Source: Hamiltosporidium tvaerminnensis FI-OER-3-3
Taxonomy: Eukaryota; Fungi; Microsporidia
Assembly (NCBI GenBank): GCA_022605425.2
Contig: CM061253.1
Span: forward strand, 496,001-560,000
DNA length: 64,000 nucleotides
Direction: 5' to 3'
The notes below the pieces were generated by a model. It saw only the letters and a program-made list of their open reading frames with translations. It made no database searches and was not told the origin of the DNA. Shown in pieces: positions 5,881 to 53,800 of the stretch (position 1 is its first letter; the number at the start of each line of letters is the position of its first letter). A program made the translations under genes and the position numbers.

Positions 5881-6528
<648 letters not shown>

Positions 6529-6807
6529 TTGTAAAACTATAAAATATATATTCAATAAATAAAAAATTTCGTTTAAAAGACGTTATAACAAGTAAAAATA
6601 GATTTCCACTATGAAAAAAGTTGTAAATAATAATTTTATTAATATGGAGGACACAAAAAATAAACTCGAAGTAGAATCTATAATTTTACGAAATAAATTA
6701 TCTTGTTATAAATATTAGAGGGAAACAATAAAATGGAATGAAGCTATACATGCTTTCTAATCAACATGTTGGTATTAATAGAATATAGAACTTTTTTAAT
6801 ATATACT

Positions 6808-13659: not shown

Positions 13660-14372
13660 AAAATTAAAAAAAAACATTAATTTTTTTATGCACAGGGCAT
13701 ATTTAATATTGTTTTCACTGCACTAACTCAGCCGAGGTTCAATATAAATAATTGTGCACTATTTATACCATGGGTACTTACACTCTACCATACCTACGTT
13801 TCAATGATTTTGATTTAGCTATTTAGAACCTTATAATAGTGAAGATGTAGTTCTACTATCGTTAGTGTTCTTTGTATGGGGTTTTATAGCAAATAAAACC
13901 TAATCCTGTGTTATTTCCCACTACAGTATTCCCTTTATTCATACCTTCCTAATCCAATAAAATTCTGCTAAATATATCTCGACAACTTTCATACAATCAA
14001 ACTAGACGCTGTAATCTCATATCAACAAAATTTTCCTACTATTTAGCTCTCGTGGATTTAAAGAGTGTGTTTTTATAGCTTCAAGGCGTAAGTCTTATAA
14101 TCCGAGGGAACAAGGTTAGGTTTCCTTGCTTTTACATGACAATTACATACGATTTAATGAGCTGTCTATAATATACCCGCATAAAAACTACAAAAAAAAT
14201 TTATAGAGCTGGTTTCGTGATTCCTCAGACCTTCTGCTTCTCATACTAACCCATCCGGAAGAATCGAAAATACAGTTCAGTTATATTCCTACTAAAAATT
14301 CAAACAATGATTTCTACACCAATCATTATACTCTTTGCTAATTAGATAGTTTTTAATGATCATCTTCGTCTT
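13660..14372 (-). mobile_element. ~720-bp structured element, copy 2 (highly degenerate)
   Basis: Reverse-complement landmarks occur in the expected order, e.g. ggcgtaagtctt...aaggttaggtttccttgcttttacatgacaattac (14085-14147), tccaataaa, tacctacg. Confidence 0.75.
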
Positions 14373-16502: not shown

Positions 16503-17120
16503 ATGTCAGACATTTCAACACATTATGGAGGTTCTGTTTTAGCGATTAAAGGAAAGTCTTCTATATTTATCGCGGCAGATAAAAGATTAGGACAAGGTTC
16601 GATAACAGTAAATAAGGATTTTGTGCGTATACATCGTATATCACCACATCTTTATATATCACTGACATGCTTTGTCCCGGATGCACAAGTATTATTAAAA
16701 AATATAATAAAAAATTACAATCTTTTTGAATTAAAAGAAGGTAGAAAAATGGAACCACAAGAATTTACTAAAATGGTTTCATTTATTTTATATTCTAAAA
16801 GAGGTCAACCTTATTATACCGAACCCGTAATTGCAGGTGTAGATAGTTCAGGAAAACCATATATTGCAAATATGGATCAGCTTGGTTGTATTAGTGAGCC
16901 AGATGATTTTGTATGTGCTGGAACAGCAGACAAAAATCTTCTTGGTATCTGTGAAGCATTATGTTCCAAAGAAATGGAAGACGAGGAGTTGCTGGTAATC
17001 GGTGGACAAGCTTTTCTAAATGCACTTGATCGAGATGCACTTTCTGGATGGGGTGGTGAATGTTATCTAGCAAATCGTGATCGTGTTGTGAGACGTAGTT
17101 TTAAAGCAAGACAGGATTAA
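16503..17120 (+). CDS. PUP3: 20S proteasome subunit beta-3
   Basis: YGGSVLAIKGK..IAADKRLG, RGQPYYTEPVIAG, MDQLGC, DRDALSGWGG and a C-terminal ..RQD, as in PSMB3/Pup3. 205 aa. Confidence 0.95.
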   Translation: MSDISTHYGGSVLAIKGKSSIFIAADKRLGQGSITVNKDFVRIHRISPHLYISLTCFVPDAQVLLKNIIKNYNLFELKEGRKMEPQEFTKMVSFILYSKRGQPYYTEPVIAGVDSSGKPYIANMDQLGCISEPDDFVCAGTADKNLLGICEALCSKEMEDEELLVIGGQAFLNALDRDALSGWGGECYLANRDRVVRRSFKARQD

Positions 17121-17190: not shown

Positions 17191-17910
17191 AGTGGATAAG
17201 AGGATAACCACATTAAAAACTATCTGCTTGACAATGCGTATGTGAAATTGGTGTGAAAATAATTAATTGGATTTTAGGCCGAACTAAAACCAAACTTATT
17301 TTTGTTGCTCCATGGAATTTTTATAACGAGGAAAGATTATAAGGAATAAATGAAAATATTTCTAAAAAGTTAATTTGTAGTTTTTTTTGTAACTCGATTT
17401 GGAAACCATTGGTGAACTTTATGTTTATTACTATGCACAGGCATCTAAACCCAATTTTTCTTATTTATATCAGAATACTTAGCATATATGTGAAATTCAA
17501 AAAAAATATTCTTTAAAAAGCCGGGGATTCTAAGAAGCAGACTGTGCCTGTTGGTATGACATTGCAACGTCTAGGTGGCCTTATATAAGTCACTGAAATA
17601 TCACTTGATTTGAAGTATATTCGGTTCTTCAGGTGTAAAATGAATGAGAACGCTGCAGATTTTAAATCAGCCTAAGGGTGGTTTAGATCTGCAATCATAC
17701 TGCATGCAAGAAGAATAACGAACACATGGCCAATGAATGTCTAATAAATATGTTCCACAAATTTTTATATGAAAATCTTAGCGATATAAGTATTGTTGGC
17801 CATACCGATTATTTATTAGGTGTGTATTTATCTATGTTCAACCTAGAACCTCGTTATTGACATGAAAACAATATGTCACATGCCATTCGTACAAAAAGCT
17901 GTGATATTGA
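17191..17910 (+). mobile_element. ~720-bp structured element, copy 3 (degenerate)
   Basis: gaggataaccacattaaaaactatctgcttg ... cctgttggtatgacattgcaacgtctaggtgg ... aacctagaac ... aaaaagctgtgata. Confidence 0.85.
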
Positions 17911-23319: not shown

Positions 23320-24009
23320 AAATTTTAGAAAATAGTGGCAAGTCTTTTATTTTTTTGATGACATTAAGCCGCTATAGGTTTAACATAAATGATTGCTTCC
23401 TTTACTCCATCAGTATCCTTAGATATCTAATCCGAATCTTTTTCTTCTAACCGGCTAGTAACACCCAATTAATGACTGAAGCAGTTGCCGGGAGTTCTTT
23501 TATGTCCATTGAATGGACTGTGATCATGGGTAGCTACTCACCTTGCCCCCCTCTGAAACTATGTAGATTTCCCTTTTACTCTACAAATTCCGACCTAAAA
23601 ACTTCTGGCTAGGATATATTTCAGCGACTTAAATTGGTTAACCTAGACAGTACAATGTAATACCAACATATATAACCCGCTACTAAGCTTTCATGACTTT
23701 AAAGGGGAAATTTTAAATTATTTTCTTTGGCGCTAAGTCTTCTAATCCGAGTGAGTGAGAGTAGATTTCCATGCTTTACATGATAATTATCTATTGATTC
23801 AGCAGCGGTCTTCGATCTAGTTACATAAAAAATTACAAAATAAATTTTTAGAGAAGGTTTCGCCATTTGGTAGGCCTTCTCTTCTTCATAAAAACATCAA
23901 TGGAAAATCAAAAATTTAGTGTGGTTTTATTACCATCAAACCCCAAACAAAGGTTTTCAGTTACCATTACCAAGCAGATAATTTTTAATGTGGTTATCTT
24001 CTCTCCAAC
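23320..24009 (-). mobile_element. ~720-bp structured element, copy 4 (subfamily B-like)
   Basis: Reverse complement of the consensus, from ggttatcttctctcc (5' end) to atagtggcaag (3' end). Confidence 0.88.
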
Positions 24010-25138: not shown

Positions 25139-25400
25139 TTATTAATCGTTGTATTTTAACTTACCCATTGTTTTATTGAGATAAAACTTTTTAAAAAAAA
25201 TATTATTTTTTTATTAATCATTGTATTTTAAACCTACCTTTGTTTTATTGAGATATACCTTTTTAAAAAAAATATTATTTTTTTATTAATCATTCTAATT
25301 CTAACCTACCTTTGTTTTATTGAGATTTACTTTTTAAAAAAAATATTATTTTTTTATTAATCGCTGCATTTTAAACCTACCCATTGTTTTATGGAGGTAT
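25139..25400 (+). repeat. ~71-bp tandem repeat (3 full units plus a partial unit containing the VMA4 start codon)
   Basis: Unit ttattaatc..tgtattttaa(a)cctacc(c/t)..tgttttat(t/g)gag(a/g)ta..ctttttaaaaaaaatattatttt at ~25139, 25211, 25282 and 25354. Confidence 0.9.
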
Positions 25401-25975
25401 CACAGGAACAAGATATAGAAAGAATAGTATCCTTTATAAAACATGAAGCAAAAGAAAAAGTACAAGAAATATTAATTAAAGCATCTGAAGAATATAACAC
25501 AGAAAAAGCCAAAATAGTGAGAAGCGAGACAATGAAAATAGAAAGAGATTATTTACAAAGAAAAAAAAAATTAGAAATACAAAAAGTAATGAATGAGAGT
25601 GTAGTTCGTAGTGAATTGCGTATGAAAGAATTATTGAAGAAAGTAAATTTACTTGAAATTTTTTTTATGTCCGTAAAAAAATCTTTAAAAAATCGAATTT
25701 TAAAAGCTGAAAATATTTTAAAAGATTGTGAAAAAATTAAAGAAAATAAAATTCTTATTTTTTGTCTTAAAAAAGACGAAAAATATGTAAAAAATTGTGT
25801 TGGAAATAAATATGAAATTGAAGTTAAAGAACTTGGGGAGGAATATATTGGAGGGGTTATTGTCTGTAATAGTGATAGAAGTGTTATTATTGATAATTCT
25901 TTTAAAAGTCTTATTGAGATATTAAAAGAGAAATATATGTCTTTAATATGGAAAATATTAGTAAAAGGATGCTAG
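25391..25975 (+). CDS. VMA4: V-type ATPase subunit E
   Basis: IERIVSFIKHEAKEKVQEILIKASEEYNTEKAKIV and C-terminal IGGVIV...VIIDNSF. Confidence 0.92.
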   Translation: MEVSQEQDIERIVSFIKHEAKEKVQEILIKASEEYNTEKAKIVRSETMKIERDYLQRKKKLEIQKVMNESVVRSELRMKELLKKVNLLEIFFMSVKKSLKNRILKAENILKDCEKIKENKILIFCLKKDEKYVKNCVGNKYEIEVKELGEEYIGGVIVCNSDRSVIIDNSFKSLIEILKEKYMSLIWKILVKGC

Positions 25976-26289: not shown

Positions 26290-28167
26290 ATGTTCATTTC
26301 TATCGATGAAATACACGAAGTAAAGAATTTTTATGCATCTAAAATAAAATATAGCGATACAATAATTATAGATAACGGTTCATATTTATGCAAATCAGGA
26401 TATAGCAATTCTGATAAGCAACTTGTATTTAAGAATAAATATTACAAAACAAAGACAGAAAATAGTATCGAACATGTAACACATGCATCTGTTAAAAGTA
26501 TGTTTGACGGAGATATAATAACAAATTTTGAGACAGCAGAATGTATTTTTGACAAAATATTTGAATTTTTGGAGTGTAAAAATGTAAAAAATTTAATTTT
26601 AACTGAATGTTTAAACAATCCATATTTTAGTAAAAAGAATTTAATAGAAATGTGTTTTGAGGTTTATAATGTTGAGAAATTACAGATTGGGCACGATTTT
26701 ATTTATTCGTATCTTTTTAATAGAAAAAGATTTGTTAAAAGTGAAAAATGCGTTTTGATTGTAAGTATGGGGCATTTTGGAACAGATGTTGTGGTTTTAA
26801 GGGAAGATAGAATTGTTGAGAAGTATAAATTAAATTATGGAGGGAAACAGTGTAGTGAGTATTTGTTAAAACTTTTACAGATAAAAAATACCAATTTAAA
26901 TTTAAAATTGAGTTTAAAACACACAAATTATTTATTGAAATATCTTCGATGTGCTCTTGATTATGAACAGGAGACATTAGAAATGTATAAAAATTTACAG
27001 GAGGGAAAGGAAGAAAGTGTTGTAATTGGAAAACCAGAAAGAATACAAACTAGTAATTTTGATAAAATTCCTAAAAAAATTAAAAAAAATAGCAAATTCG
27101 GTAAATCTAAAGAAAAAATAATTGAGACTAGTAGTGTTGAAACCACAAGTAGCAGTATTAGTGAGGAAAGTGATTCTGATGAGAATATCGAGGAAGAAGA
27201 GAGTGAAATTACTGAAGAAAATTACGAAGAAGAAATAAATATTGAAGAGGAGAACGTTGAAGAAAATATTGAAGAATCAAATGAAATAATTAGAGAAAAT
27301 ATTGAAGAATCAAATGAAAAAATTGAAGAAAAAACGAAAGAAGATGAAAAAGAAGAAAGAAAAAACAGAATGCTTTATTTTTCAGGTATTTACAGATTCA
27401 AAGTAAAAATAGAAAAATGTTTAAAAACTTTAAAAAGTAATTTTGAAAATCTATCAGAAGAATACGAAAAATTATCGGATATAAATGGATATATTGAGAA
27501 GATACGAAACAAATATTCAAAAATAAAAAAAGAGATAAAATTTAGAGAAAATATAAGAAATCAACTTAAAAATAAAAAAAGTAGAGAATATAATTGTAAA
27601 TTCAAAATTTCTTATGGTATGGAATTTAATGGAGAAGAGGAAGAAACTTTAGCGATGAAAATTGTAGAGTCTGAAGATATGGAAATGGAATCTGTATTGA
27701 CAAATGAAATACAAAAATATATAAATATTTTGATGGAATACGATAAAAACTTTAAGCCATTCGAATATAATGTAATTGAAGTTTTGAAAGGTGAAAATAC
27801 CAATTTAAATGGTTTATTTATAAATATTGAAAGATTAAAAGCGGTAGAAATTCTTTTTGAGCCAGGAATAGTAAATTTAACTCAACCTGGTTTAATAGAA
27901 ATATTTGAACATGCCTTTTCTAAATTTGAAATTGACAAAATATTTGTTACAGGAGGATTTTCTAAAATAGAAAATATCGAAAAAAGAATTTATAATGAAG
28001 CAAGAAAAGTAGCTTTTAATGATATTCAAGTTATTGTATCCGAAGATCCTCAATATGATAGTTTGAAAGGCGCATGTTTTTCTGATATATTTCCTGTTAT
28101 AACGAAAGAAGAATATTTTACTTTGGGATTAGACGCAATCATGGAAAAGTATTATTTCAACAGATAA
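26290..28167 (+). CDS. ARP5: Actin-related protein 5 (INO80 complex)
   Basis: Actin motifs IIIDNGSYLCKSG, ERLKAVEILFEP and IFVTGGFS, with a long acidic/coiled-coil insertion typical of Arp5. 625 aa. Confidence 0.85.
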   Translation: MFISIDEIHEVKNFYASKIKYSDTIIIDNGSYLCKSGYSNSDKQLVFKNKYYKTKTENSIEHVTHASVKSMFDGDIITNFETAECIFDKIFEFLECKNVKNLILTECLNNPYFSKKNLIEMCFEVYNVEKLQIGHDFIYSYLFNRKRFVKSEKCVLIVSMGHFGTDVVVLREDRIVEKYKLNYGGKQCSEYLLKLLQIKNTNLNLKLSLKHTNYLLKYLRCALDYEQETLEMYKNLQEGKEESVVIGKPERIQTSNFDKIPKKIKKNSKFGKSKEKIIETSSVETTSSSISEESDSDENIEEEESEITEENYEEEINIEEENVEENIEESNEIIRENIEESNEKIEEKTKEDEKEERKNRMLYFSGIYRFKVKIEKCLKTLKSNFENLSEEYEKLSDINGYIEKIRNKYSKIKKEIKFRENIRNQLKNKKSREYNCKFKISYGMEFNGEEEETLAMKIVESEDMEMESVLTNEIQKYINILMEYDKNFKPFEYNVIEVLKGENTNLNGLFINIERLKAVEILFEPGIVNLTQPGLIEIFEHAFSKFEIDKIFVTGGFSKIENIEKRIYNEARKVAFNDIQVIVSEDPQYDSLKGACFSDIFPVITKEEYFTLGLDAIMEKYYFNR

Positions 28168-30340: not shown

Positions 30341-31617
30341 ATCAAAATAAAATTGTCTTTGGAACGCCTATAACCCGGTACAGCTATGATTCATCGTTGG
30401 ATTGTGTTATATCTATAGTAAATGACCGAGCTATTAACAATATTATTAAATTAAATACTAACTGGTTTTCCACGAATGATTGTTTATTTTAAATTTTTTA
30501 TGTTCGATAATTAACTTAGAAGTATTCAGATACAAAAAAACTTCAAATATTAAATTAGTGTGTCTTTATAGTTGAGATTTAGATAAATTATTTTCAAACA
30601 CACTTGAGTATTTTAATCCATTAAATTGGCTTCTCAGTAGTAAGAATTGTTTTACATTGCTTTGAATTGAATTTCTTCCCAGAATATTAATTGCAAAGTT
30701 TTTTTTTCAACGTAAAGCAACATAAAACTCTAATATAGTATTTCGAAATTTCCTTAATTTATTTTGTCATATTCTTTAAGTGCAAGCAAGAAATTCAAAA
30801 AAAATAGTTATTTCCTATGATAATACTTCCAAATATGATTAGACTAAATATATAGCCGAAACTTCCTTATAATTGTTAAAAATGATCCTATCAGATGATG
30901 TGATGTCTTGCGTTTTTTAAGCCAAATATAAAATAATATTTTAAGCGATATTAAAGCGTTTTACTATTTATACAAAATCACAACCATAATTAAGCCTTTA
31001 CTAACAATTTCAATGCAGTCAAGCTTATTTCGTCTGTATTTTAAAAAATTGAAAAACTTTAGTTATTAATTATTTTTTTAATACAAAATATTCCACTTTG
31101 AAATCTTTAAATTGAAAAGGCCTGTATTTATTTACTCTAAAATCATATTTAGATATTTATATTTAATTAGTAAAAAAAATATTTTTTTTTAATTTGTACA
31201 TTTTTGTTTAATCATTCAAATATCTATAACTTTCTTCAATTTCTTAAAATTTAATTTTTAGTTTCAATGTAAACCAGTTTAAAAAGATAAGTTAATATCT
31301 AAACTATTAAGTATCATTCACTATAATTAGGCTTTTTAGAAATTATTTTAAAATTTTAATTGATAAATATATTTGTAATTTAAAGATTTAAATTCCGGAT
31401 ATTGTACTAAAAAGTTCTAATTTAAAAAAAATGTACTAATTTTATTTTTTAACTAAAAAATTATATTAAAATCACAGCTGTTGATTTACAACATTTTTAT
31501 TTTCATATTTTATAGAATTTTTTTTTATTTGATAGCTATCAACAGACAAGATAAGAATATAATCAGATCATTATAATATAATTACATTATTTAATAAGAA
31601 ATATAGATTTGGTTTTA

Positions 31618-31818
<201 letters not shown>

Positions 31819-32640: not shown

Positions 32641-32702
32641 ACACAAATTTTATGCTCTCATTGCCAAGCAGATGGTTTTTAATGTGGTATCCTCCCTCCA
32701 CC
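32641..32702 (-). mobile_element. 5'-end fragment of the ~720-bp structured element (copy 5)
   Basis: ctcattgccaagcagatggtttttaatgtggtatcctccctccacc is the reverse complement of the element's 5' end. Confidence 0.85.
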
Positions 32703-33746: not shown

Positions 33747-34298
33747 AATATAGAATTTAGATTTGAAAAAAAAAACATAATATATTTATGAATAATATTT
33801 TTAGTATTTGTTCAGATATTTAAGATTTGAAGAAAGTTTTGAATAAATATATTATTATATTATTTTAATTTATATAGATGAGTACTTAAGTTTTGAAAGA
33901 ACACAAAAATATAATATTATATCTTCGTCTTGTTATAATTGCAAACACAACTTACAATAAATTTATTTTTCTTAGTTAAAATATAATTTCAAACTATATT
34001 TATTTAAACTTCTTTCATTCGTAAAATATTTCATAATTAAATATTCCAATTGAGGAAAAAATATAAAAAGCAAGTTTATCAAAATTTAAAAACTAGCCAT
34101 ATAAAATAGGAAAAATATTTGGTTTATACATCATAATTAAAAGAAATAATAAAATATAAAAATAATAAAATGTTTTCTTGAATATATAGATTTTTATTAA
34201 CGATAAATTAAATTTCTTTTTGCAGTTCTAGAAGATTAAGATTTAAACAGAAACTTAGATTTAATATAATTTTTTAAATCTTTTTATATGAACTAAAC

Positions 34299-35022
34299 GT
34301 GGAGGGAGGATAACCACATAAAAAACTTTCTGCTTGGCAATGAGTGTGTGAAACTGGTTTGAGATCATTGTTTGGATTTTTGGTGGGAATAAAACCACAC
34401 TACATCTTCGGGTGTTCCATGGGAGTTGTTATGAGGAGTAGAGGTCTAAGAAATGGAGAAACTTTTTCTACAAAGTTATTTGTAGTTTTTTATGCAACCA
34501 GATTGCAGACCGCAGCTGAACATGTTGGTAATTGCCATGTAAAAGCATGGAAACCTAGCCTTGCTCACTCGGGTTAGAAGACTTAGCGCCTGGGAGATAT
34601 AAAAAAAAACCATTAAAAGCCGGAAAAGCTAAGTAGCAGGTTATACCTTTTGGTATGACATTGCATTGTCTAGGTGGACCCCATGTAAATTTCTGAAATA
34701 TATCTTAGCTAGAAGTTTATTGGGTTCAGAAAGTGTAGAGTAAGTGTGAATGCTGCATAGTCTTGGGGGAGCCCGGGGGGGCTTCGGCCTTCGATCACAC
34801 TCTATGCAACGGACATTAACGAACTCCGCGCAACTGCCTCGCCTATTAATTAGGTTCTACACACCTGGTAGATGAAAGGCTTTGGGGCGTAGGTATCGCA
34901 GGGGTTACTGATGGAGTTTTGGGGTAGCAGTTATTTATGTTAAACCTAGAACTGCGTTAATGTCATAAAAACAAATATAACACTTGCCACTGTTTTAAAA
35001 AGATGTGATACTTTCAAATAAA
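34299..35022 (+). mobile_element. ~720-bp structured element, copy 6 (subfamily B, best preserved)
   Basis: Full 5' and 3' landmarks. ATGAACTAA lies on both flanks (34288-96, 35028-36) and may be the core of a TSD. Confidence 0.92.
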
Positions 35023-35192
35023 TTTTCATGAACTAACATATTTAAAAATTTAAATCTAAGATTATTTTGATTTTTATAAGAATTTTTAGTCAATAATTTT
35101 TTTTTTGCATTTTTAAATGAATCGAATTGAAAGCAAACATATTTTTTTACTTCTTTTAAAAAAACAGAATATAATTGTAATTTGAAAAATTT

Positions 35193-35906
35193 AGGGAGAA
35201 TAACCACATAAAAAACTTTCTGCTTGGCAATGAGTGTGTGAAACTGGTGTGAGGATCATTGTTTAAGTTTTGGTAGGAATAAAATCACACTACATCTTTG
35301 GTTGTTCCATCGGAGTTGTTATGAAGGGGAGAGGTCTAAGAAATGGAGAAACTTTTTCTACGATTTATTTGTAGTTTTTTATGTAACTAGATTGCAGACC
35401 GCAGCTGAAAATGTAGGTAATTGCCATGTAGAACCATGGAAACCTAGCCCTGCTCCCCTTGGTTAGAAGACTTAGCGCCTGGGAGACATAAAAATAAAAA
35501 CAATTTAAAGCCGATAAAGCTAAGTAACTAGTTATACCTGTTGGTATGACATTGCAGTGCCTAGGTGGACTCCATTTAAGTCTCTGAAATATATCTTAGC
35601 TAGAAGTTTATTGGATTCAGAAAGTGTAGAGTAAGTGGGAATGCTGCATAGTCTTGGGAGTGCCCAGGGGTATTCGGGTTTCGTTCACACTCCATGCATC
35701 TGACATTAATGAACTCTGGGCAACTGCCTCGCTTATTAATTAGGTTCTATATACTCGGTAGATGAAAGGTTTTGGTATTTAGGTATCGTAAGGGATACTG
35801 ATGTAGTGCTGGGGAGCTGTTAGATGTAAACCTAGAATGCGGTTATGCAATGAAAAAAATATAACTTATGCTACTGTTTTACAAAGATGGGATACTTTTA
35901 AATTAA
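35193..35906 (+). mobile_element. ~720-bp structured element, copy 7 (subfamily A)
   Basis: Colinear and ~170 bp downstream of copy 6. Shares the diagnostic gggatactgatgtagtgctggggagc with copy 1. Confidence 0.92.
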
Positions 35907-35970
35907 AATATTAAAGAAAAAAATATTTAAAACGAGTTTTAATCTTTTATATGTTTCGATAATATTTGCA

Positions 35971-38147
35971 TTAATATGTTTTAAGTAATATTTTCTTGCA
36001 TTTTCTTAAATTAAGAAATCTATTGGGATCTAAGAATATTGAACATTTTTCAAAAACCAATGTTTTATATTCTTTTATCATGTCCATAGTTGTTTTAAAT
36101 TTTTCAAAATTTTCACATTTAATATTGAATCCAATAAATTTAAAATTCTTGCATTCTTTAAGCAAAAAACAAAACTCTAAATTAGAAATATCAATATAAT
36201 CATTAATTATTCTAATTGATATACAAATCATTTTTAAATACTTTACATTTTTAACAATGTTTGTGATATTTATTATTTCTTTTGTAAATAATATATTTTC
36301 AAAGTAAATTTCTATTTCTTTGAGGTAGTAAAATTGATGAAGAAAGGTGTCAGAAAATTGGATAAAAAATTATAGTCTGTTGTTAATTTCTCAATTGTAG
36401 TTAGCTAGGAAATATCATATATTTGTTTTCCGGTATAATTTAAAAGCGTAGCGGATCATAAAAAACTTAAATCTAAAAATATGTTTAAAATCACCAAATC
36501 ATAACTAAAACATTTAAGATATAATTCTTCGAGATTGGAAGTTATAAATTTTATTTGTTTTTTCTGTAAAATTTCATATGAATTTATTTTACAATTTTTA
36601 AGTTTAATGAAAGTTACGTTATTATTTTTTAATATTATAAATAGGCAAAAAGCATCGACTGTAATATTTTCTAAAATCAATTCTTTTATATTCTTATGAT
36701 TTTCCAACTGTGGTATTATGTCGAAAAAATTATTATCTGATCTTTTAGAATAAAAACCAAATTTATCTTCACTGATAAATATATTATAAACATATGTACA
36801 TATTTCTATTGAATGTATTCGGTTTGCAAATTTTCATCTAATAAACTTAAAAATTTTAAAGAATAATTTTAAGATATGGATATTCTAATCAAAAGATTTT
36901 TTTTCTGAATTAAATTATTTAGAAAGGATATTGTCCTAGTGTTTAAATCTGTTATATCATTAAACTTCAAATCAAGCGTATGTAATTCTTTAAATTTTAT
37001 GTTTCTGATATTAGTGAAATATGAAAAACGACTTAATTTAATAAACACCGATGTGTCTCTAAAATTTTGAAGATATAGAAATCAAAACAAGAATTGCTTT
37101 CAAATATATTACGAAAACAAAAACATTTTAAATTCCTAAAATACGAAAGATAAAAAGATATTTCTGTTGATAAATATGAGGCAATTTCAAGGTTTGTAAT
37201 TTTTTGAAACTGTTGGTGTAAATTATATAAAGAAATTGAAACAATCTTATTGTAATCTGCAGGAAAGATGTTACAAGATTTATTTGATATTACATTTTTT
37301 TTGTTCTTCAGTTGAAAAAAATGACGGATATATTTTTAATTAAATGATCTGTAATTTTTCACAAAATAAAAGTAATAAACTGAGCTCCTGTAGTTCTAAT
37401 GCTATAAACTTCACTTTAAAACCATATAACCACTCATTTTTTTTTGCTAATATCTTTTCTTGTAATAAAAATAAAAGATTTCAAATTACTATCAATCAAT
37501 TAGAGAAATTCAATAAATGTAATTAAAAATCTTTCATCTTTACATAGTCGATTAGGGAAAGATCCAAATAACCAAGTAAAAAAACAAGAATCAATTTCCA
37601 AAGTATTTTTAAAGAATAAAGAACAATTATTGAAAAGTTCTCTAAATATAACTTCAAAAAAAACATCTTCAAATTCAAATAGAAAATAATCTGTTATAAA
37701 ACAAAATCTGAACATAAAATCTTCATTAAATTTTTCAGATATTTTTTTATAATTTAATAAAGCTATAAAAACATTAAAATAATCGATGTTGAAATAGATT
37801 GGTAATAGAATTGATTCCTTTTTATACTTTTTTTCTGGGTTTAAATAAGTATCTATCATTCCAGATTTATATCCATTTTTATTGTCATAATCAAACTTAA
37901 CAGTTTTATACTCATTTGAATCTCGTTTTTCCAAACATTCAATATTTTCTTTTTCAAATTTTAAGTTATAATCGTAAAACCATTCTTCGCTATAAAGACT
38001 ACTCACTTCTTTATTTATAAATCTGAATTCTATTTGCTCAGAAGTTATTTGGTTGATTATAAAAACTAAAAGAAAACAAAAACGAATAAATTTATTTTTA
38101 CTACCGTATTTTGAAAGAATATGTTGATTCATCCAGTAGATTAACAT
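35971..38147 (-). pseudogene. Fragmented secreted LRR-like lineage-specific gene
   Basis: ORF 37500-38147 has a hydrophobic N-terminal segment (FCFLLVFIINQITS). Downstream same-strand ORFs 36456-36707 and 35971-36231 contain IKELILENI, IKLKNC and LEELYL, which are LRR-like. Confidence 0.55.
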
Positions 38148-40149: not shown

Positions 40150-43103
40150 TATGTAAAGTCTAGGTCTTATGTCATCAAAGAAAAAATTATTGGCTTTGGT
40201 CCATGAAACAAATAATAGTATATTTCAAAAAGTATTTTTTATAACTAAAATCCATTGAAAGCTTAATAAGTTCTAAGATTATCAAAGTACATCACAAACT
40301 ATAAGAAAAATTTATAATCAGATAGAATATATCCAAAATAGCTAGTCTCAAAAAAAAATTTAAGGATAAACTATAAATCTCAAATGTTTAATAAAAAGAA
40401 AAATTGTATACATTTCTTATATTATATGGTTTAAGATAGTATTTAAACAGTATTGCACTATTAACTTTCAATTTTCATCATAGGTTTTATATATTACATG
40501 AGAAAAGAAGACGCCTAAATATCAAATAAATTTTCTAAAATATATAAGAATAATAATAATTTTATATGATTGGCTGTGAAAACCAAGAAATACTTGAATT
40601 TAGGAAAGTAATATACTATATTTTACATTTTTAAAAGGATATGATATTTATTTTCGTTCCCATATGGTCGAATTTATCCATATGGAGTGTTTTTGCCCAT
40701 ATACGAAGATTACAATGAAGACAAATGAAAAATATATAATAGGGCAACAATAAAAAAATGTAAAATACACCTGCGAAAGAATGATTTTATATATAGCCTC
40801 CTTAGTCTGTTTTACATATAACTTTCGATATTCAAAGATCTTAGTAATTAAAAACTTCTCAATCAACAGAACTAATTACTATATATGCAACCTACTCTTC
40901 TTTATAGAAGCTATTTGTTTGTTTCTTGGGATCATAAAGTTAAACAAAGAATTTTTGAACTACTACCACGTCTTCTAGATTGAATATGATGCCATGGCAA
41001 TAAACTCCGTATCTTCGACCATTCTTGAAATATACGCATATTTTTGCTCCTCGTAAATCTTAAATGACCAAACACAAAGAATATTGGCTGAAATTTCTAT
41101 CTGCCACTAAATGTTTTTTTTTAGATATATACTATTCAGAATCTAATGATATATTATTGTTTGAGTTTAAAATTTTTCTTGATAGTCGGTTGAATTGATC
41201 CGGAAGGCGATATATTTATATATGTTCGAACTTTAAATACCAGCATTGGGTCATTTTATTGGCCTACTCCATGATGTATAGTATGCAAATATAATATTAT
41301 CAAAATCTTCACTGCAAATTTTCGACATCAGAAAATCTATTCGCAAAAAATTTAAAACTTTTGAGCAAGTTTTTCGATTAACCCTTAGTCATGGGAAAGT
41401 CTTGGTACCCCTTTAAACCCTATCATACGCCTAAAAATATAAATTCTTCTACGATTGAATAGATTCATTCAATCGTTATCGCTTTCCAATTAAGCTGCGT
41501 GCCTTCATATTTAAATATTTTCTTTATTTCCAATAGAAAGTCTGATCGTTTAATTCTTGAATGCAAACGAAACAAGAAGTTTAAAATAAAGTCTAAAACT
41601 TTTACACTTATTCATATCTTATTTTTTTGTATTCCCGATTTCTTTGATCAACACAATATATCTGCATGATGTACCAAGGATGCGGTTAAAATATGAATAT
41701 TATGTAAAAAATAAAAATGAATTGTGGTTATTTTTTGCAATTAAACATTTGTGGTCATGATTGTTTTTCTATCGTCTTTGAATTGTATAAACTATTTTTG
41801 GGGTTTTATAGTCGCATTCATCGTTTGTGGCCAGGTATACGAAGCGTGTCAAATATTGCATGCCTTTTTTCAAAGTTATTTTCAGCAATTGGCTTTTTAT
41901 AATGTTTTCATTTTCGTCATAAAACAATCTTCGCCTTTTAACCTGTAGTTTTGTTTCTGGAGAAATTTTTTTTATTTGAAAAAAACCTAAAAAACGCACT
42001 ATTTTTATTTTTAGGTGAAGTTTTATAATTTTTATATATATCATAATTAATTAAATTCTACGCGAATGAATTATTACCATGTTTCCACTTCGAAAACCAT
42101 TTCAATCAAAAATTTATAAACTCTATTGAAATTCTGCCAACATATAAAGCATCATAGGTTTAGCTATAAAATATCATATTAATTTAAACAAAGGAAGCTT
42201 GAAGAACATTATCTATCTAATCAATCTATGATATGCACTGCATATAGGTTTGAAAGTATTCAAATAAATAAAATACCTCAATTATAGAATTGGTTGTATT
42301 GAGCATTTTGTTTCTAAATTTCGTATGTTATTGATGATTAATTGGGTATATACTTATCTGTGAAAATACTGGCAAATAAACCTCAGCTATCAGCTATCAA
42401 AATGAGATTATAATCAATCATTTTATCGAGAGGATAATGGTTAATGCATATATTAAACTTTTTATTCTGGTTTTGGTCTAAAGTACATTGTATTTTCACC
42501 ACCATAATCATCTCATTTAAACTAGTTAAAATATGGTTAAATTTATATAAAAAATAAATTTAGCATAAATTTCAAATAAAGAAAAATCTAAAATCAATAT
42601 TTTTCTGAATGGAAATTTAATTTCTGAATCTTTAAAAAAATCAGTTGATTTGGAAAGTAAAGATCGCCCTTGTGTTAAAGAAAAATAAATGTGCTAATAA
42701 GAATAAACCAGTGACGCTTTTTATTAAAATTGTATATTTAGTATTGTCAAAAATTATCACTTGAATGTATAATGCAAATGTATAAATACTTACTACAACG
42801 AATATTATTAAAAACATGGCTGAAATACCATATAAAAGGTTTATTGAATATAATAATTTATTACAGAATTTATATTCCTCAAATTTCGACATTACAATTC
42901 TTTCATTTATCTAATTTTATACTTTCGCGAAATATTTTTTTTAAAAAGTATATATCTTCAGAAAAATTTATCTAACTATGACTCAAATCATTGGCAATTT
43001 TATTCAAGCTTCATATTTTCTTACGTTTTTTGCAAGATAAAATATAAATTTAGTTTTAAATTTTATTGAGATTTAGTTTTAAACAAAAATGTTTAAATTA
43101 CGA

Positions 43104-43830
43104 TTTATTTAAAAGTATCACATCTTTTTGAAACAATAGCAAGTGTTATTTTTGTTTTCATGACCGTAACGCATGTCTAGGTTTACACTAAATAACTGCT
43201 ACCCCAACACTCCATCGGTAACCCCTGCGATACCTACGTCCCAAAGCCTTTCATCTATCAGGTGTGTAAAACCTAATTAACTGGCGAACCAGTTACCCGT
43301 AGTATGTTAATCTCGGTGTATGGAGTGTGATTGAAGGCCGAAGTCTGCTCTGGGCTCTCCCAAGACTTTCCAGCATTTCCACTTACTCTATCTATACCGA
43401 ACCCAATAAACTTCTAGCTAAGATATATCTCGAAGACTTACATGGGATCCACCTAGAAAGTGCAATGTTATTTCAACAGGTATAACCCGCTACTTAGCTT
43501 TCCCGGCTTTAAAGGTTGTTATTTTTATATCTCTCGGTCCCTAAGTTTTCTAATCCGAGTAAGCAAGGCTAGGCTTCCATGCTTTTACATGGCAATTACC
43601 TTCAAGTTCAGCAGCGGTCTGCAATCGTTTCACATAAAAAATAACAAACCAAATTTGTAGAAAACATTTTTCCATTTCGAAGACCTTCTCCTTTCCATAC
43701 AATTCCCTTGAAACAACAGAAGATTTGGTGTGGTTTTATTCCCACTAAAATTCCAAAAAATTATCTTCATACCAGTTTCACATGCACATTGCCAAATAGA
43801 AATTTTTTTTATGGTTATCCTCCCACCACC
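43104..43830 (-). mobile_element. ~720-bp structured element, copy 8 (subfamily B)
   Basis: tttatttaaaagtatcacatc ... ggttatcctcccaccacc, i.e. a full reverse-complement copy. Confidence 0.92.
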
Positions 43831-45634: not shown

Positions 45635-46738
45635 TCACACACCTTTAACAATTTGAACGACATCGCTATCATTTAAAACATGATCTTTACCCACTCGTTG
45701 AGGATTATGTTTGACAGATGTTCCCCAAACCAATGCATATTTAAATTTACTCATAATTGATTTATGTATCGAATTACAAAAATCTTCTATTTTTTTTCTT
45801 TCTTCTCTTAAGATTACAGGATCTTCATAATCAATAGCCATTCCTCTGGGTTTGGCATACACTCTTATAAGTTTCAAATAATCCCAAGATTTTGATAATA
45901 AATCATCAAAATTCCATCCTAAATGTGCACATACCGGCACACAATTAGGTATTCTATAAATCAAATCCAATTCTTTTATCCCAATACAATCTATCTTATT
46001 CAAGACGTATAAACAAGGAACGTATTTTCTATTTCCATCAACACAATCAATAAATTCATCAACAGAACATTTTTCATTAAAAACTACTTCTGCATTATTT
46101 ATACGGTATTCTGTTAGAATACCTTTAACTATTTCCACTTCAACAGCATCTTCATCTTTACTTTGATTATAATTGTAGATAACTGTTATTCCACCTTTTT
46201 CTTTTTTATTGATTTTGACATTTTTTGGCTTTGTATTTAAACGAATACCGAAATGTTCCAATTCTCTCTCAATTACTTTTTTATGTGTCAATGGTTTGGT
46301 ACAATCCAATACGATAAGTAACAATGAACATGTTTTAGCTACACCAAGCACTTGTCTACCCCTTCCTTTACCTTCCCGAGCACCTTCTATTATTCCTGGA
46401 AGATCAAGAATTTGTATTTTGGCACCTCTATATTTAAGGACACCAGGAACAGTGGTCAACGTAGTAAATTCATAATCGGCTATTGCACTATATGTACCTG
46501 TCAGTTTAGACATGAGTGTGCTTTTACCTACACTTGGAAATCCTATAAATCCTATACGAGCAATTCCTGTCTTGCTCACATCAAAACCCCCTTCAACCGT
46601 AGATTTATTTTGTGGTAGGTTAAGTTGTTCTCTTCTTAATTTAGCCAATCTTGCCTTCAGTAATCCCATGTGATGCGCAGTAGCTTTGTTTTTTTGTGTT
46701 CTTGCTATTTCATTTTCTATTTCTTTAATTCTATCCAT
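45635..46738 (-). CDS. RBG1: Developmentally regulated GTP-binding protein 1 (OBG family, TGS domain)
   Basis: [24 protein letters not shown] (DRG1-type), G1 [29 protein letters not shown], and a TGS tail [13 protein letters not shown]. Confidence 0.95.
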
Positions 46739-47765: not shown

Positions 47766-48926
47766 ATGGATGAAGTACAAATTTGGAAAACAAAAAAAAT
47801 ATTAAAAAATCTAAAAAATGCGCGTGGAAATGGAACGAGCATGATAAGTTTGATAATTCCACCCAAAGAATGTATATCCCGTTCTACTAGATTACTTACC
47901 GACGAATATGGAACTGCTTCAAATATAAAATCGCGTGTAAATAAAAACAGTGTATTGAGTGCCATCGTATCAGCACAGGCAAAATTAAAAACCTACAGTA
48001 AAACACCAACCAATGGATTGGCTATTTATGTAGGTACTGTTGTAGAAGATACTAAAGAAAAGAAAGTAAGTATTGGTATTGAACCTATCAAACCTATAAA
48101 TACTTCTTTATATATGTGTGATTCTAAATTTCATGTTGATGATTTGCTTAGACAATATGAAGATGAAAGTAAATTTGGTATTATTGTTATGGATGGACAC
48201 AGCACATTGTTCAGTACTGTACAAGGAAATGTTAAAACAATTTTACAAGAACTTACAGTTGATCTTCCTAAGAAACATGGAAGGGGTGGTCAATCGAGTG
48301 TAAGATTTGCTCGATTGAGATTAGAAAAGCGGTTAAATTACATTAAAAAAGTAGCTGAGATTATGAATGGTATTTATTTGACAGACAGTAAAATAAATGT
48401 GGAGGGGTTGATTTTAGCAGGCCATTCTGATTTTAAAAATGAATTAAAAACGTGCGATGTTTTGGATCATAAAATACGTGAAAAAATAGTAAAAATTGTA
48501 GATGTGAATTATGGAGGAGAAAATGGGTTAAATCAAGCCATAGAATTGAGTGAAGATGTGCTTAAAGAGTTAAAACTCAGTAAAGAAAAAAATATTCTTA
48601 AAAGATTTTTTGAAGAGATGGCTTTGGACGGGAAATATTGTTACAGTATAAAAGATACTATACAGTGTCTTGAAAGTGGATGTATTGAAACTTTGATTGT
48701 GTGGGAGAATCTTGCAGACAAGAAAGACGAAGAAGATTTTGTAGATTGGATATCAGAGAATTATAAAGAATTTGGATGTGAATTGATATTTGTAACAGAC
48801 AAAAGTGCAGAAGGAACACAATTTGTTGAAGCATTTGGAGGAATCGGCGGTATTCTAAGATATAAAGTAGAAGGAATCAATGATTTCAGTGATTATGAAA
48901 GTATAGATGACAATGAAATTTTCTAA
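47766..48926 (+). CDS. SUP45: Eukaryotic peptide chain release factor 1
   Basis: GTSMISL, TASNIKS, YMCDSKF, GRGGQS, GGIGGILRY. 386 aa with a shortened domain 3. Confidence 0.97.
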   Translation: MDEVQIWKTKKILKNLKNARGNGTSMISLIIPPKECISRSTRLLTDEYGTASNIKSRVNKNSVLSAIVSAQAKLKTYSKTPTNGLAIYVGTVVEDTKEKKVSIGIEPIKPINTSLYMCDSKFHVDDLLRQYEDESKFGIIVMDGHSTLFSTVQGNVKTILQELTVDLPKKHGRGGQSSVRFARLRLEKRLNYIKKVAEIMNGIYLTDSKINVEGLILAGHSDFKNELKTCDVLDHKIREKIVKIVDVNYGGENGLNQAIELSEDVLKELKLSKEKNILKRFFEEMALDGKYCYSIKDTIQCLESGCIETLIVWENLADKKDEEDFVDWISENYKEFGCELIFVTDKSAEGTQFVEAFGGIGGILRYKVEGINDFSDYESIDDNEIF

Positions 48927-49748
48927 AAAAAATCATTGAAAGAATGACTTGGTTTATTTCGTAGTTACTTTTAAGACAAATTAAATTCCGAATTTCTATT
49001 AAATAAATTAAAAAATATTTTTTAGTTGAGAGAAATATACTTTTAAGCTTAAAAAAGTTTTAATTCAGACTTTTCCTTTGAAGAACCTTTTTATGGTTTT
49101 CTGATTATTTCTTCTTGGATTAAACAATGCAATTCGAATAAAAGTTTTTCTCTTTTACATATTTTCATGTGGTTTTCGCAAATATATTTTAAAGTTAAGC
49201 TTTGCATTTTTTTATAAAAATATAAAATTCTTGGTAGAATTAAAAATTGTGAGTGTTTTAGTTGCATTTAAAAACCCTTTTGTAAATTTTTAAGTGAGAA
49301 TAGTCGTCTAGTTATACTCGGAAGTCATTGTGCATAAATTATGTGCCTTCGCTTTATGATTTTTTTTGCCAAAACAGGATATTATTTATCATTTTTCGGC
49401 GCTTCTGTATATTTCTTTTAAGGTTTTATATTAATAAGCATACTGCTTTTACTGATTTTCGGAATGATTTTTTTTGTGATTCTCATAATTATATATTGTC
49501 CACCACAGGCTTGTATCTTTGTAACGATAAAAAAATCAATTTTTATTTTTTTGGTGTTTATCAATTGTCTTTTATGCCAAAAAACCATTTGAAATATCAA
49601 AAATATGCATTAGAAACATGATTATAATTTTTAAACAACCGAAAATTAGATAAAAATTCAATTATATGAATTTTCTTTAGAAATTAACAATTTTTCTGAA
49701 TTTGAAGATTTTTAATTTCAAAGTTTATCAAAATATTAAAACAAGTTT

Positions 49749-50819
49749 GGAGCAAGGGCTCCTTTTATAGTTCTAAATTTCCTTTAAAAGCATTAATTTA
49801 AGACCAATGTCATTAAATTTATATTTATAGCATTACAATCCTAACTTACTAACATTTTACAACACTAACCAATAAATTAAATACAAATTTAATGATAAAT
49901 CTAAGAAAAGAATATTTTTAAACGCTTTATTAAGAGCTAAACAATCTTGACATTAGTTACACCTAATAATTCAGTTTCTTTTTTTTCCAACAGCAAATTT
50001 TAAAGGTAACCGAATTTTTTCTTAAATTTTCTATCGTTTGGAATGAAATTCTTAAGCGGTGACCGATTTGCCTCAATCGTGTTGGTATGAACAGCTGAGA
50101 TAGAATCAATAAATCCGCGCGAGTGATTTACTGTTTTGTGATCAAGATATTTTTTCGAATCCTTATAACTCTTTCAACAGTCGTATAGATTATACTATTG
50201 AATTTACAAGTTGTAATATTATGCGGTAAGTGTTTCTTTAGTTCTACCAGAGATGGGTATCAACATTATCTATCTTACGAGCTGGTGTTCCTTCAACCAA
50301 TCTTAAAACCCAAATACATACAACTCTATGCCCCCTGTTGTACTTTAGTTTACCAAATTTGCATTCGTCAAATTAAACGCTGATCTCATTACCTCCAATA
50401 TAGTCATTGGTTGCAATCAAATTATTTTTGGGTTTATCATTCATTTGATTAACTTATGACTTTAATCCCTCTTTAGTATATTCCTATCAGAACATATTGT
50501 TCACATTTGTGTGTTATTAACTAAACCACAATTGTTTTATAAAAGATTTCAGGACTTTTTTTATACTTCTCAAGCAATGTACCTTTAAAACCAGAAACTT
50601 TCTTTTTATATGTAGACCATGTACAAATCAAAGTGAATGATGATTTTGGCACGAAGCTTGTTAAAGAAATACAAGCACTGCGTTTTGGGGCTAAAACAGT
50701 TAATATATGTAATTTAAGCCAATTACTAAATTCATTGAAACTAAAACTCATTTAAAATGGCAAAAAATTAAAAAATTTCTGAAGCAGGGTGAAATGTACT
50801 ATAAAGGTACCTTTCGCCT
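49749..50819 (-). mobile_element. Decayed Merlin (IS1016/ISXO2-like) DNA transposon
   Basis: Minus-strand peptides GGNEISV*FDECKFGKLKYNRGHRVD and HKTVNHSRGFIDSISAVHTNTIE. Imperfect TIRs GGAGCAAGGGCTCCTTTTATAGT / AGGCGAAAGGTACCTTTATAGT. 9-bp TSD AACAAGTTT (49740-48, 50820-28). Confidence 0.88.
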
Positions 50820-53800
50820 AACAAGTTTATAACTCAAATCATTTGTTTTAAAATTTTATTAATAATTGTGGTTACATAGTCTTACTGGGATATTATGCCG
50901 GATGTATTGTAATTTTATATATTCTTGGTAGATTAATATTCCAATAATTCTTGTAGAGCACAGGCTTCTAGTTTTTTTCAAGAATGTCTTATATTGATTA
51001 TTAAAGACCATAAATACAATCTATTCTGAAAAGTGTGTTCAATTTAGAAAAATATATATATTTAAAAACTTAACTAGAAAATTAGAGGTGTGTTTTAAAA
51101 TTTTATAGTTTTGATTGCCTTCGACTCTCAAATACATACTTGTGCCCAATTTATAAATAATAGGCAGTCATCAAGCCATAAAATCTTATTATATAATCTA
51201 AACAATATTAATTTCGAAACAACATAATCGAGGCTTTAAACATTTTATAAAAAATCAAAATTTATATAATTCAGTAAAATGTGCAACAACAGTCTTTTAA
51301 ACAATAATCCAAGTATGGAATTCTAAATATAAAGAAATATAAAAAATATTCTCATCCCAATCGCATTATTGATTCTAATAAAGTCAACATATTTGAAAGG
51401 AATCATTATTCGCTTGCCAATAATTTAAAAACAAAGGAATTCCATATAAAGTTTGTTTCTAGAAAATTATATTGGCTATAACACCAAAAAAAAATGAACT
51501 ATTTATTACGTTAAAGGCTCATAAAAATGCTTGCGTCTACCTTTCTTTGATCTCATTTAGCCAAAAAATATTGGTGAGGTAAGAAGGTGAAAAGGCGCAT
51601 TAAATAATTTAAACTAATGAGTGGGACAATTCAAGATGCAGTCGAAGTCAACATATTAGTGATATACTCCACATTGTAAAATACTTACAATTTGAAAGTA
51701 ACTTGAAATTCCACTTTTTATTGATATTATAAATGTAATATATTATATTTTGTAAATTATAATGCTATAATAAATATACTTTAGAAATTAGCTTATTTAA
51801 AAAAAATTCAAGTATATTTAAACGTGGTTTCTAATCGAAAAAACCAAACAAAACTTAACACGACAAAATCTCTATTTTAACCCAGAAAAATATAACTTTC
51901 GTTTACGAGCCTAGCTCATATTATTCCTATTTAAGCTAAAATCTTCATCAATCATGACACTTTTACATGCGAAAAGAAAAATATATCACATAATGCTTCT
52001 TTGATCTTATATTCGCGTCGATATCTATTCACGGTTAATTCGAATATTCTAGTAATTATGAAATATGCCATTAGTGAATGGGTAATTTGATAATTTTTTT
52101 AGAAACAAAAACAAGATGATATTATTTTAAACTAAATATGTATGATAAACACGTATATTAAAGAAAAAATATATACTTACTCAAAGAAATCAAGTAAAAA
52201 ATATTTAATCGTAATAGCAGCTTTCGCTTTGGTGAAATTTCAAGTGGCGTACGTTGTTTATTCAAAAGTCTTTCTTTTTCAGCTGCAAATCCAAATCTGG
52301 AGCCACGGAGACTATAGCGTTGGCCCGAGATTAGATGATATTCATGCAATTCTCTCTATCAGTCTCTGCATATGGAATTTCTTCGGACTCATAAACTTTT
52401 CATGATATATTGTCACTTCGTTCATCGCTTAATCGGATTTAAGTTTCGATGGTTTGTGTCAAATTAATAAAATTTGAGATCTGTTATTTTTAGAAAAAAG
52501 GCCACAGTCTTCCTTGCCTTGGGAGACTATTGTCTTCATCCGGAACACATGCACTTCCCTATCTTAGCAACAGAGTATTCTGATTAGAGATTTCCTTCCT
52601 TTTTTTCAGCTTGTTGTTTAGATTTTTTGCGGAGCACTCCACAATTTTTAAACTTGTATTGTTTTCTTTTTTTTTAAATTTGAATTTATAGGTAGGTAAC
52701 AGAACCATCATCCGCACATTTTTAGCCACAGAAACGCATATTTGGAATCTTGAAAACATTTATTTCCCTTGGATTGTTATGAAAACAAGCACCTGATTTG
52801 GATGACGAGGTTGGGTATTGAAAACAGCTATCAAATGAAGATGCTTGCTTTTCTTTATGTGGTGATGTTTTTATGTTGCTTGGTAATTTTGCAGTACGGA
52901 TTTTTTTTGACTGTAAATTATTTAAATCTTTGGTATTATTTCTAAGTTCTCTTGATTATTCATATTAGAAGGAAACTTCTGTTGGTAAAAAAATATTTAC
53001 CAAACTATAATTTTTTTAAAAACATGGCTTCATATGAAGATAATTTGCGTCACATGAATAGGTATTTTTATAGTCAGAGTAAAAGGGAAGCTTCTTGTCT
53101 ATTTTCCTCTGTTTGTGTCTTATTGCCAATAAGAAAAATAATTACTTGATTCTTATTTTCATCTTCCAATGGAAATCTGACTTCGAGTGTGATTAACTCC
53201 TGTTACACTATCTATAACTCGAGCAACATTTTAATAGTTAATCAGCAAGAATGAAGGCAAATTATCTACCTTGTCAATTTAAAAATTGTAGATGCGCTGA
53301 AATTGGTAAAAAAAATCCAAAATAACACAAGCTTCTTTCTTTGATTTTTAGAAGTCGAACCAAAGACATTATCAAATGATTTTTGTATACTAGTATGAAG
53401 GTATATTGATTATAAGGTTATGAATGTTTTTGGTTAAAGCTACTTGAAATTACGATTTCTTGTTTTTACTTAGTATCGGTTTTACTACTATACTTTTTCT
53501 ATTACACATATCAAATTTTTGCACGGCATACATAAATTTTTTTTTAGCAATTTTTCATGCAACACTTTCCCTTTTTATTTGGCTTTTTTCCGATAATCGT
53601 AGCATATGTGCTTAATCTTAATATGAGCATCATGAAAAATTTACCCCAATGTATACAAATTGAATCTGTATTTGTATTTCTCCTCTGCTAAGTTATCATA
53701 TTAGACTTGCATAAAACCCGATATTCCTGTGTTTTTTTGGTCAATAACTTGCTTTAAGACGCTTTAAGCTTTATATTAATTCCAAGCGTTGTTTTTTTTG

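Follow-up and report, generated by a model that had tools for sequence, protein, structure and literature searches.

The 64,000-nucleotide stretch of Hamiltosporidium tvaerminnensis FI-OER-3-3 considered here (positions 496,001 to 560,000 of contig CM061253.1, forward strand; hereafter the window) carries several copies of an element of about 727 bp, which is very likely a non-coding, non-autonomous retrotransposon without long terminal repeats (LTRs), with the lifestyle of a short interspersed nuclear element (SINE) and no RNA polymerase III (Pol III) head, that probably uses the enzymes of a Dong/R4-like long interspersed nuclear element (LINE). The element family is abundant and recently active. 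A preliminary description of the window had proposed the element both as a mobile, retroposed RNA and as a functional large, multi-domain, pseudoknotted RNA or ribozyme. Its spread through an RNA copy is borne out by target-site duplications that vary around 12–15 bp, by constant ends with untemplated bases at the 5' junction, and by a site that is empty in the window and filled in a sister species; the large functional fold is not sustained by the analyses of its structure.

Ends, target-site duplications and insertion sites

The ends and junctions of the element were read from 30 oriented genomic copies aligned with their flanks. They have sharp common ends, GTGGAGGGAGG...TTTTAAATAAA, which appear in the alignment as GTGGAGGGAGGATAAC...GATACTTTTAAATAAA(G), and the flanks are AT-rich and unrelated. 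Target-site duplications surround 24 of these 30 young copies and measure 9–26 bp, with a mode of 12–15 bp, and 0–2 untemplated bases separate the left duplication from base 1 of the element. These 5' extras end in G, a base that is rare in the genome, in 7 of 14 independent cases, which matches the expectation from copying of a cap but is only a hint, as the duplication boundaries are uncertain by 1–2 bases. No preference for insertion just upstream of start codons was found among the 30 young copies.

In the window, the youngest copy begins with GTGGAGGGAGG, ends with TTTCAAATAAA and is bordered by a duplicated target:

34299–35022, plus strand: full-length copy of the SINE-like retroposon, 97% identical to the majority sequence of the young copies (blastn match 34299–35026)
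34288–34296, no strand: left 9-bp target-site duplication ATGAACTAA of this copy, followed by two extra bases (AC) before the element
35028–35036, no strand: right target-site duplication ATGAACTAA of this copy, after five extra bases (TTTTC)

Variable duplications, untemplated 5' bases, fixed ends and the lack of terminal repeats are together the signature of target-primed reverse transcription by a LINE enzyme, which rules out LTR elements, miniature inverted-repeat transposable elements (MITEs) and Helitrons.

Orthologous stretches in Hamiltosporidium draft assemblies, whose strain names are taken from the literature (PMC6944219), were reached by exact-protein look-ups. Proteins of the window recur unchanged in the drafts of both H. 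tvaerminnensis and H. magnivora; a look-up of the actin-like protein of the window found no contig. In contig PITI01000043.1 of H. magnivora BE-OM-2 (locus L055), a copy of the element occupies positions 6584–7311 and has the same target on both sides, which in the window is uninterrupted:

49500–49509, no strand: empty target site CCACCACAGG, filled in H. magnivora BE-OM-2 (L055:6584–7311)

The duplication in this filled and empty pair is 9–10 bp long, and the pair is direct proof of insertion. The copies at 34299, 35193 and 43103, by comparison, occupy the same sites in the draft assemblies.

Several observations accompany these alignments. At one genomic locus (L005:~1475–1500), nucleotides 1–21 of the element (GTGGAGGGAGGATAACCACAT) occur a second time just upstream of a full copy, with AT in between, which looks like a template jump or a restart at the 5' junction. 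Two other copies, L004 and L019 (G000:C1:938542 and C1:1028672), have identical flanks and an identical 12-bp duplication; they are a segmental duplication about 90 kb apart and not independent insertions. Next to the empty site, window positions 49501–56116 are 83% identical to L055:4–6583 over 6.6 kb, while the neighbouring stretches are 96–99% identical, which points to a block of markedly higher divergence, or to a region that is paralogous or haplotypic. Finally, a very AT-rich stretch of about 200 bp at window positions 31611–31813 (the kilobase around it has 13% G+C) is absent from the draft contigs of H. tvaerminnensis IL-G-3 and H. magnivora BE-OM-2. An FI-OER-3-3 contig starts at the boundary of this stretch, and its absence reflects an indel polymorphism or else a difference between assemblies.

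Copies in the window

Local blastn with the 34290–35030 stretch as query locates six near-full copies of the element in the window, one partial copy and one 45-nt fragment of the 5' end, which make up about 4.7 kb or 7.4% of it; the identity of the other copies to the one at 34299 is 69–87%. The preliminary description had counted seven near-full copies and a 5' fragment, at about 8% of the window. Six of the seven and the fragment hold, and the copy that it placed at 13660 on the minus strand is only partial. In addition to the copy at 34299, the window contains:

35193–35906, plus strand: older full-length copy, 86% identical to the young majority, of an older subfamily with the 6809 copy; 170 bp downstream of the 34299 copy
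6809–7527, plus strand: older full-length copy, 88% identical to the young majority, of the older subfamily with the 35193 copy
43103–43829, minus strand: older full-length copy, 85% identical to the young majority; orthologous site filled in the draft assemblies
23329–24007, minus strand: ancient decayed copy, 71% identical to the young majority
17200–17906, plus strand: ancient decayed copy, 69% identical to the young majority; about 80 bp downstream of a proteasome-subunit gene
13943–14358, minus strand: partial ancient copy covering element positions 19–436 (local blastn)
32657–32701, minus strand: isolated 45-nt fragment of the 5' end of the element, 91% identity

The element has 41% G+C against 26.6% in the window, and the longest open reading frame (ORF) in a young copy encodes 77 amino acids from a GTG start and is not conserved. 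In these respects the preliminary description was right, as it was in reporting neither terminal inverted repeats nor an LTR arrangement, both of which are missing at the ends of the aligned genomic copies. Directly upstream of the 6809 copy lies a long A-rich tract of low complexity (5817–6800), composed of overlapping periodic repeats of about 8–15 bp, with 18% G+C and an AT skew of 0.56.

Abundance, age and decay of the family

A search of the H. tvaerminnensis FI-OER-3-3 genome (21,638,905 bases in 17 contigs) with the element returned 1429 first-look candidates, and about 1000 were returned when older copies served as the query. The hits that were scored, which are 40 of the 1429 candidates, were all full length (40/40) and 95–97% identical to the window copy. 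The fetched young copies (n=30) are 98–99% identical to their own majority sequence, to which one of the near-full window copies is 97% identical, three are 85–88% and two are 69–71% identical. These identity classes point to several waves of activity. When the genome was queried with the two oldest window copies, only the main family was returned, at 70–76% identity, and these copies are therefore read as dead insertions and not as members of a separate living subfamily. The copies at 6809 and 35193 have a 4-nt deletion, the same changes at the 3' end and many other changes in common, which defines them as an older subfamily. Old copies retain A/T positions at a rate of 0.86 and G/C positions at 0.75, which indicates that inserted copies drift toward the A/T-rich composition of the genome, whereas the source copies remain rich in G+C. 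Metagenome contigs scanned for exact patterns gave no match to the element.

The probable LINE partner and a possible mechanism

An RVT_1 search of the genome gave 466 candidates, many of them with intact ORFs of about 1255–1300 amino acids, and at least three LINE groups are present. The dominant family is 3.8 kb long, has one ORF and comprises subfamilies that are 82–99% identical to each other. In its protein, Pfam detects only the central reverse transcriptase (RT) domain, and no apurinic endonuclease-like (APE) domain was detected; the best solved relatives are the L1 ORF2p and R2 proteins, which match through the RT, with L1 ORF2p scoring closer. The C-terminus, in translation, contains CQHCG...HLATRC...RRHNEVV followed by RPDIFILD...IEVG...EKLRKY, which is presumably the CCHC and PD-(D/E)xK signature of the LINEs with a restriction-like endonuclease (R2, R4, Dong). 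This reading agrees with the published label, since RepeatMasker tables give Dong-R4 as the main LINE class in Hamiltosporidium; RTE-BovB LINEs are listed there too, and no SINE class. Copies of the Dong/R4-like LINE have no 5' untranslated region (UTR) and start at the ATG or 0–3 bases before it, directly after the target-site duplication (L043:4048–7863, L044, L046, L047, L049, L050); the single ORF in these copies encodes roughly 1256–1385 amino acids.

Copies of this LINE end in ...TTTTATTAAATAAA or ...AACCCAGAATTTTATTAAATAAA and are flanked by 15–16-bp duplications. The element ends in ...ATACTTTTAAATAAA, and its last 9 nt (TTAAATAAA) are identical to the 3' terminus of the LINE. Beyond this 9-nt tail, blastn and Smith-Waterman comparisons of the element with the three LINE groups found no similarity, and an Rfam search of 20 LINE loci returned nothing for the element. 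The same 3'-terminal 9 nt, the matching duplication length and the unlike 3' ends of the other LINEs are the grounds on which the Dong/R4-like LINE is assigned as the partner, and it can be proposed with moderate confidence that this LINE drives the element in trans.

A cycle can be envisaged in which a source copy would be transcribed from its first base, likely by RNA polymerase II, as the sense strand has runs of T5, T5 and T6 at element positions ~79, ~164 and ~187, which make a 727-nt Pol III transcript unlikely. The 3' end of the RNA (...UUAAAUAAA) would then be used in trans by the RT and the restriction-like endonuclease of the 3.8-kb Dong/R4-like LINE, a step suggested by the identical terminal 9 nt and the matching duplication lengths. 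The endonuclease would nick AT-rich DNA, and the RNA would be copied by target-primed reverse transcription. A second nick 12–15 bp away would create the target-site duplication seen at the junctions, where the 0–2 untemplated 5' bases would also be added. Inserted copies are dead on arrival and decay with the G/C-to-A/T bias that is apparent in the old copies.

Several points weigh against this account. The origin of the G+C-rich body is not explained by it, and the precise 5' end found in nearly all copies, which is unusual for retroposition driven by a LINE, is left unexplained as well. Only 9 terminal bases are common to the element and the LINE, and as a free local alignment this match is not significant; its weight lies solely in the extreme 3' position that it has in both elements, for which the chance, by our own estimate from tail composition, is about 10^-4 to 10^-3. 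The comparison of partners covers three LINE groups, and another partner is possible.

A dependence on another driver, for example the RTE-type LINE, another APE-type LINE or a Penelope-like element, is improbable. Such a driver would fit with a common 3' terminus of only 9 nt in an AT-rich setting and with the presence of at least three LINE groups in the genome, two of which have 3' ends that are not definable from the DNA compared. However, the RTE-type LINE has a (TTTTA)n tail and its own partner of about 220 bp with its 3' UTR, the third LINE group has a long and unrelated 3' UTR, and the Rfam searches found no hammerhead ribozyme, a feature of Penelope-like elements. The Dong/R4-like LINE, on the other hand, is the most abundant one, has many intact ORFs and shows the same duplication length as the element.

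The neighbourhood of the RTE-type LINE, which is of the APE type, deserves a separate description. This LINE ends in its (TTTTA)n tail. About 160 bp past this tail, the mini-element of about 220 bp repeats a block of the LINE 3' UTR (TCTAGAACCGAAGTC...GGTGGCT.TACA.AGCCGGGTCGGTTT) and has a comparable A/T repeat at its end (tail and mini-element, L045:~3800–4230, minus strand), which looks like a second, separate pair of a LINE and a mini-retroposon. At the same locus, about 330 bp separate the 3' end of a large-subunit (LSU) rRNA gene (L045:9694–10000, minus strand) from a downstream APE-type LINE that has two ORFs (L045:4407–9358, minus strand) and may be co-transcribed with the rRNA.

Folding of the element RNA

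The reading of the element as a functional large RNA, either a ribozyme or a ribonucleoprotein (RNP) scaffold, with a fold that is under selection and that was also amplified, has only a slim chance of being correct. The helices on which it was built are real as sequence matches: all seven named helices and the GGC-UUCG-GCC hairpin lie exactly where the preliminary description put them. Moreover, the element contains more perfect inverted words than 200 dinucleotide shuffles of it, with 122 words against 80 ± 11 at a length of six (a number reached by 0 of the 200 shuffles), 36 against 21 ± 6 at seven, and 13 against 5 ± 3 at eight. The window copy folds to -213.4 kcal/mol, compared with -192 ± 6.8 kcal/mol for 20 shuffles (z -3.1), and its antisense strand does not fold better than shuffles to a similar degree (z -0.8). 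Active copies also hold 41% G+C against the genome-wide drift to A/T. With 60 shuffles, the values are z -1.7 for the sense and -0.9 for the antisense strand of a young copy, and z -1.8 for the sense strand of the 6809 copy. Against shuffled controls, the sense strand is thus only marginally better (z -1.7 to -3.1). A folding energy of about -190 to -197 kcal/mol is reached by the shuffled sequences too, and chance alone should give about 80 inverted matches of six bases and 5 of eight; dense nested pairing is thus the default at such a length and composition.

Comparison among copies shows no excess of compensatory changes, although such tests have low power here, since neutral decay governs the diverged copies, which are dead insertions. 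The covariation term of RNAalifold is -0.23 kcal/mol. Across eight older copies, most one-sided changes disrupt a pair, and double changes keep 24 pairs and break 29, which is near the keep rate of 37–43% expected by chance (slid partners). The helices named in the preliminary description lose pairs in the older copies, with 0–1 compensatory pairs per copy. The CCGCTGC/GTAGCGG helix, which was said to close a multibranch domain in two window copies (numbered 4 and 8), reads CCGCAGC/GTAGCAG in the young, active subfamily, where two pairs are lost and uncompensated, and the GCAGTT strand of the proposed pseudoknot is disrupted in the older subfamily. The minimum free energy folds of the window copy, the young majority, the 6809 copy and the 35193 copy have in common only one 8-bp hairpin, at element positions 344–363.

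The variants of the young copies (n=30) speak to some extent for selected pairing. Variants present in at least three copies, which must have been in source copies, are unpaired or pair-keeping in 26 of 32 cases, compared with 53 of 93 for private variants (Fisher p=0.019), so that propagated variants spare pairs more often than private ones. In the older subfamily, however, the same test is not significant (p=0.29).

Known RNA families do not account for the element either, as the preliminary description had supposed. Rfam gave no match in the whole window at the gathering score, nor in 34100–36000 at E<=10, including hammerhead ribozymes and group I and II introns, and ARAGORN found no tRNA. 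At the 5' end, the first 35 nt cannot adopt a topology like that of the hepatitis delta virus (HDV) ribozyme: the loop of the hairpin formed by element positions 3–10 and 28–35 cannot hold HDV-like P2 and P3 helices, and the P1 strands leave no space for a P3. On these grounds, both group I and II introns and self-cleaving ribozymes (HDV-like, hammerhead, twister and others) were rejected, and a new self-processing ribozyme at the 5' end is unlikely.

Support for a large functional fold is therefore weak. RNA stability or protein binding is probably what the G+C-rich body, the conserved ends and the slight surplus of self-complementarity serve; none of the three speaks for a catalytic or cellular RNA. 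By analogy with the R2 protein, which binds its own RNA at two sites, the G+C-rich body and the invariant ends might, rather doubtfully, be a selected, folded RNP scaffold with 3' and 5' protein-binding sites for the protein of the Dong/R4-like LINE. Such a scaffold would account for the full length and precise 5' end of nearly all copies. It would make the element and its LINE the first characterised SINE/LINE pair in Microsporidia, and the element RNA would naturally mimic a LINE template with only 9 nt of identity. In any case, a tempting false lead is removed, because the helices that can be seen by eye are mostly what chance provides for 725 nt at 41% G+C.

Other origins

A still more remote alternative is that the copies are retropseudogenes of a single-copy gene for a cellular non-coding RNA (a long non-coding RNA or an RNP RNA), copied by LINE enzymes by accident. 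The element is indeed non-coding and G+C-rich, with fixed ends and without homology to the LINEs compared. However, it matches no Rfam family, and it has about 1000 or more copies in several age classes and subfamilies with diagnostic changes, as expected from a lineage of source copies that evolves as a transposon family. Solo LTRs, terminal-repeat retrotransposons in miniature (TRIMs), large retrotransposon derivatives (LARDs), and MITEs or other DNA transposons can practically be dismissed, despite the LTR-like size and the 170-bp spacing of the copies at 34299 and 35193 in the same orientation, as the ends are GTGG...ATAAA and not TG...CA, the duplications vary from 9 to 26 bp and are not fixed at 4–6 bp, the two neighbours, with only 86% identity, come from different subfamilies and have no internal region between them, and there are no terminal inverted repeats or other inverted similarity between the ends. 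A canonical Pol III SINE was also rejected, since ARAGORN and Rfam detect no head derived from tRNA, 7SL or 5S RNA and the element has internal T5–T6 runs.

Genome setting and significance

The H. tvaerminnensis assembly of 21.64 Mb in 17 contigs consists to 39.6% of interspersed repeats, with 25.45% assigned to the category "other" (PMC10542269). SINEs are not mentioned in two surveys of microsporidian transposable elements, and the element family is, as far as the searched literature shows, undescribed in Microsporidia. If the number of 1000–1400 copies holds, the element makes up about 3–5% of the 21.6-Mb genome. With the family, its ends and duplications and its likely Dong/R4-like partner defined, the genome expansion in microsporidia with large genomes becomes easier to explain, and insertions found in only one of H. 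tvaerminnensis and H. magnivora could be used as presence/absence markers.

The host genes of the window are intron-less and compact, with long, AT-rich, repeat-filled spacers between them. They include genes for a proteasome subunit (16503–17120), the V-ATPase subunit E (25391–25975), an actin-related protein (26290–28167), a DRG-type GTPase (45635–46738, minus strand) and a Pelota/eRF1-like protein (47766–48926). Elsewhere in the genome, the genes for small-subunit (SSU) rRNA are dispersed on at least two contigs in both orientations and do not form a single tandem array (G000:C14:884776, C14:917769, C1:628303, C1:1202433 and C1:1236878); the microsporidian SSU rRNA model matches the genome end to end, with 1208 bits over 1303 nt.

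Comparison with known systems

Like the LINEs of the Dong/R4 clade, the resident LINE encodes one ORF with a central RT and a C-terminal CCHC and PD-(D/E)xK-type motif, and it has TAA-like tail units. As differences, its RT is nearer by score to L1 ORF2p than to R2 among solved structures, and it has no 5' UTR. With Pol III SINEs such as Alu and B2, the element has in common that it is short, non-coding and LINE-dependent, with target-site duplications and a high copy number; unlike them, it has no head derived from tRNA, 7SL or 5S RNA and no A-rich tail, contains internal T5–T6 runs and, at 727 bp, is longer than usual.

Another group of comparable elements is formed by the R2 short internally deleted elements (SIDEs) and by ingi/RIME and L1Tc/NARTc of trypanosomatids. 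These non-autonomous non-LTR elements likewise measure a few hundred bp and depend on a LINE protein, acting in trans, for their movement. R2 SIDEs are internally deleted derivatives of R2 that keep LINE sequence, and both R2 SIDEs and L1Tc/NARTc keep an HDV-like ribozyme at the 5' end. RIME and NARTc are deletion derivatives that keep the 5' and 3' sequences of their LINEs (PMC2996970). The Hamiltosporidium element, in contrast to R2 SIDEs, RIME and NARTc, has no similarity to the LINEs compared beyond the 9-nt tail and no ribozyme match.

The closest analogue is the EhSINE1/EhLINE1 pair of Entamoeba histolytica, in which the LINE belongs to the R4 clade and has a restriction-like endonuclease. 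EhSINE1 is a non-coding element of 500–600 bp with conserved ends and no Pol III head, and about 70 bp of its 3' end are in common with EhLINE1 (PMC2996970). The two systems differ in that the Hamiltosporidium element has 9 nt and not about 70 bp in common with its LINE and lacks internal repeats, which in EhSINE1 are 26–27 bp long; there is no sequence similarity between them, and their hosts belong to the Microsporidia and the Amoebozoa. Nevertheless, the element resembles EhSINE1 in being non-coding, in its size (500–700 bp for the two), in having no tRNA, 7SL or 5S head and no poly(A) tail, and in its conserved 5' and 3' ends, and also in its variable duplications, its AT-rich targets, a body unlike that of the LINE, and its presence in hundreds of copies in the small, AT-rich genome of a parasite.

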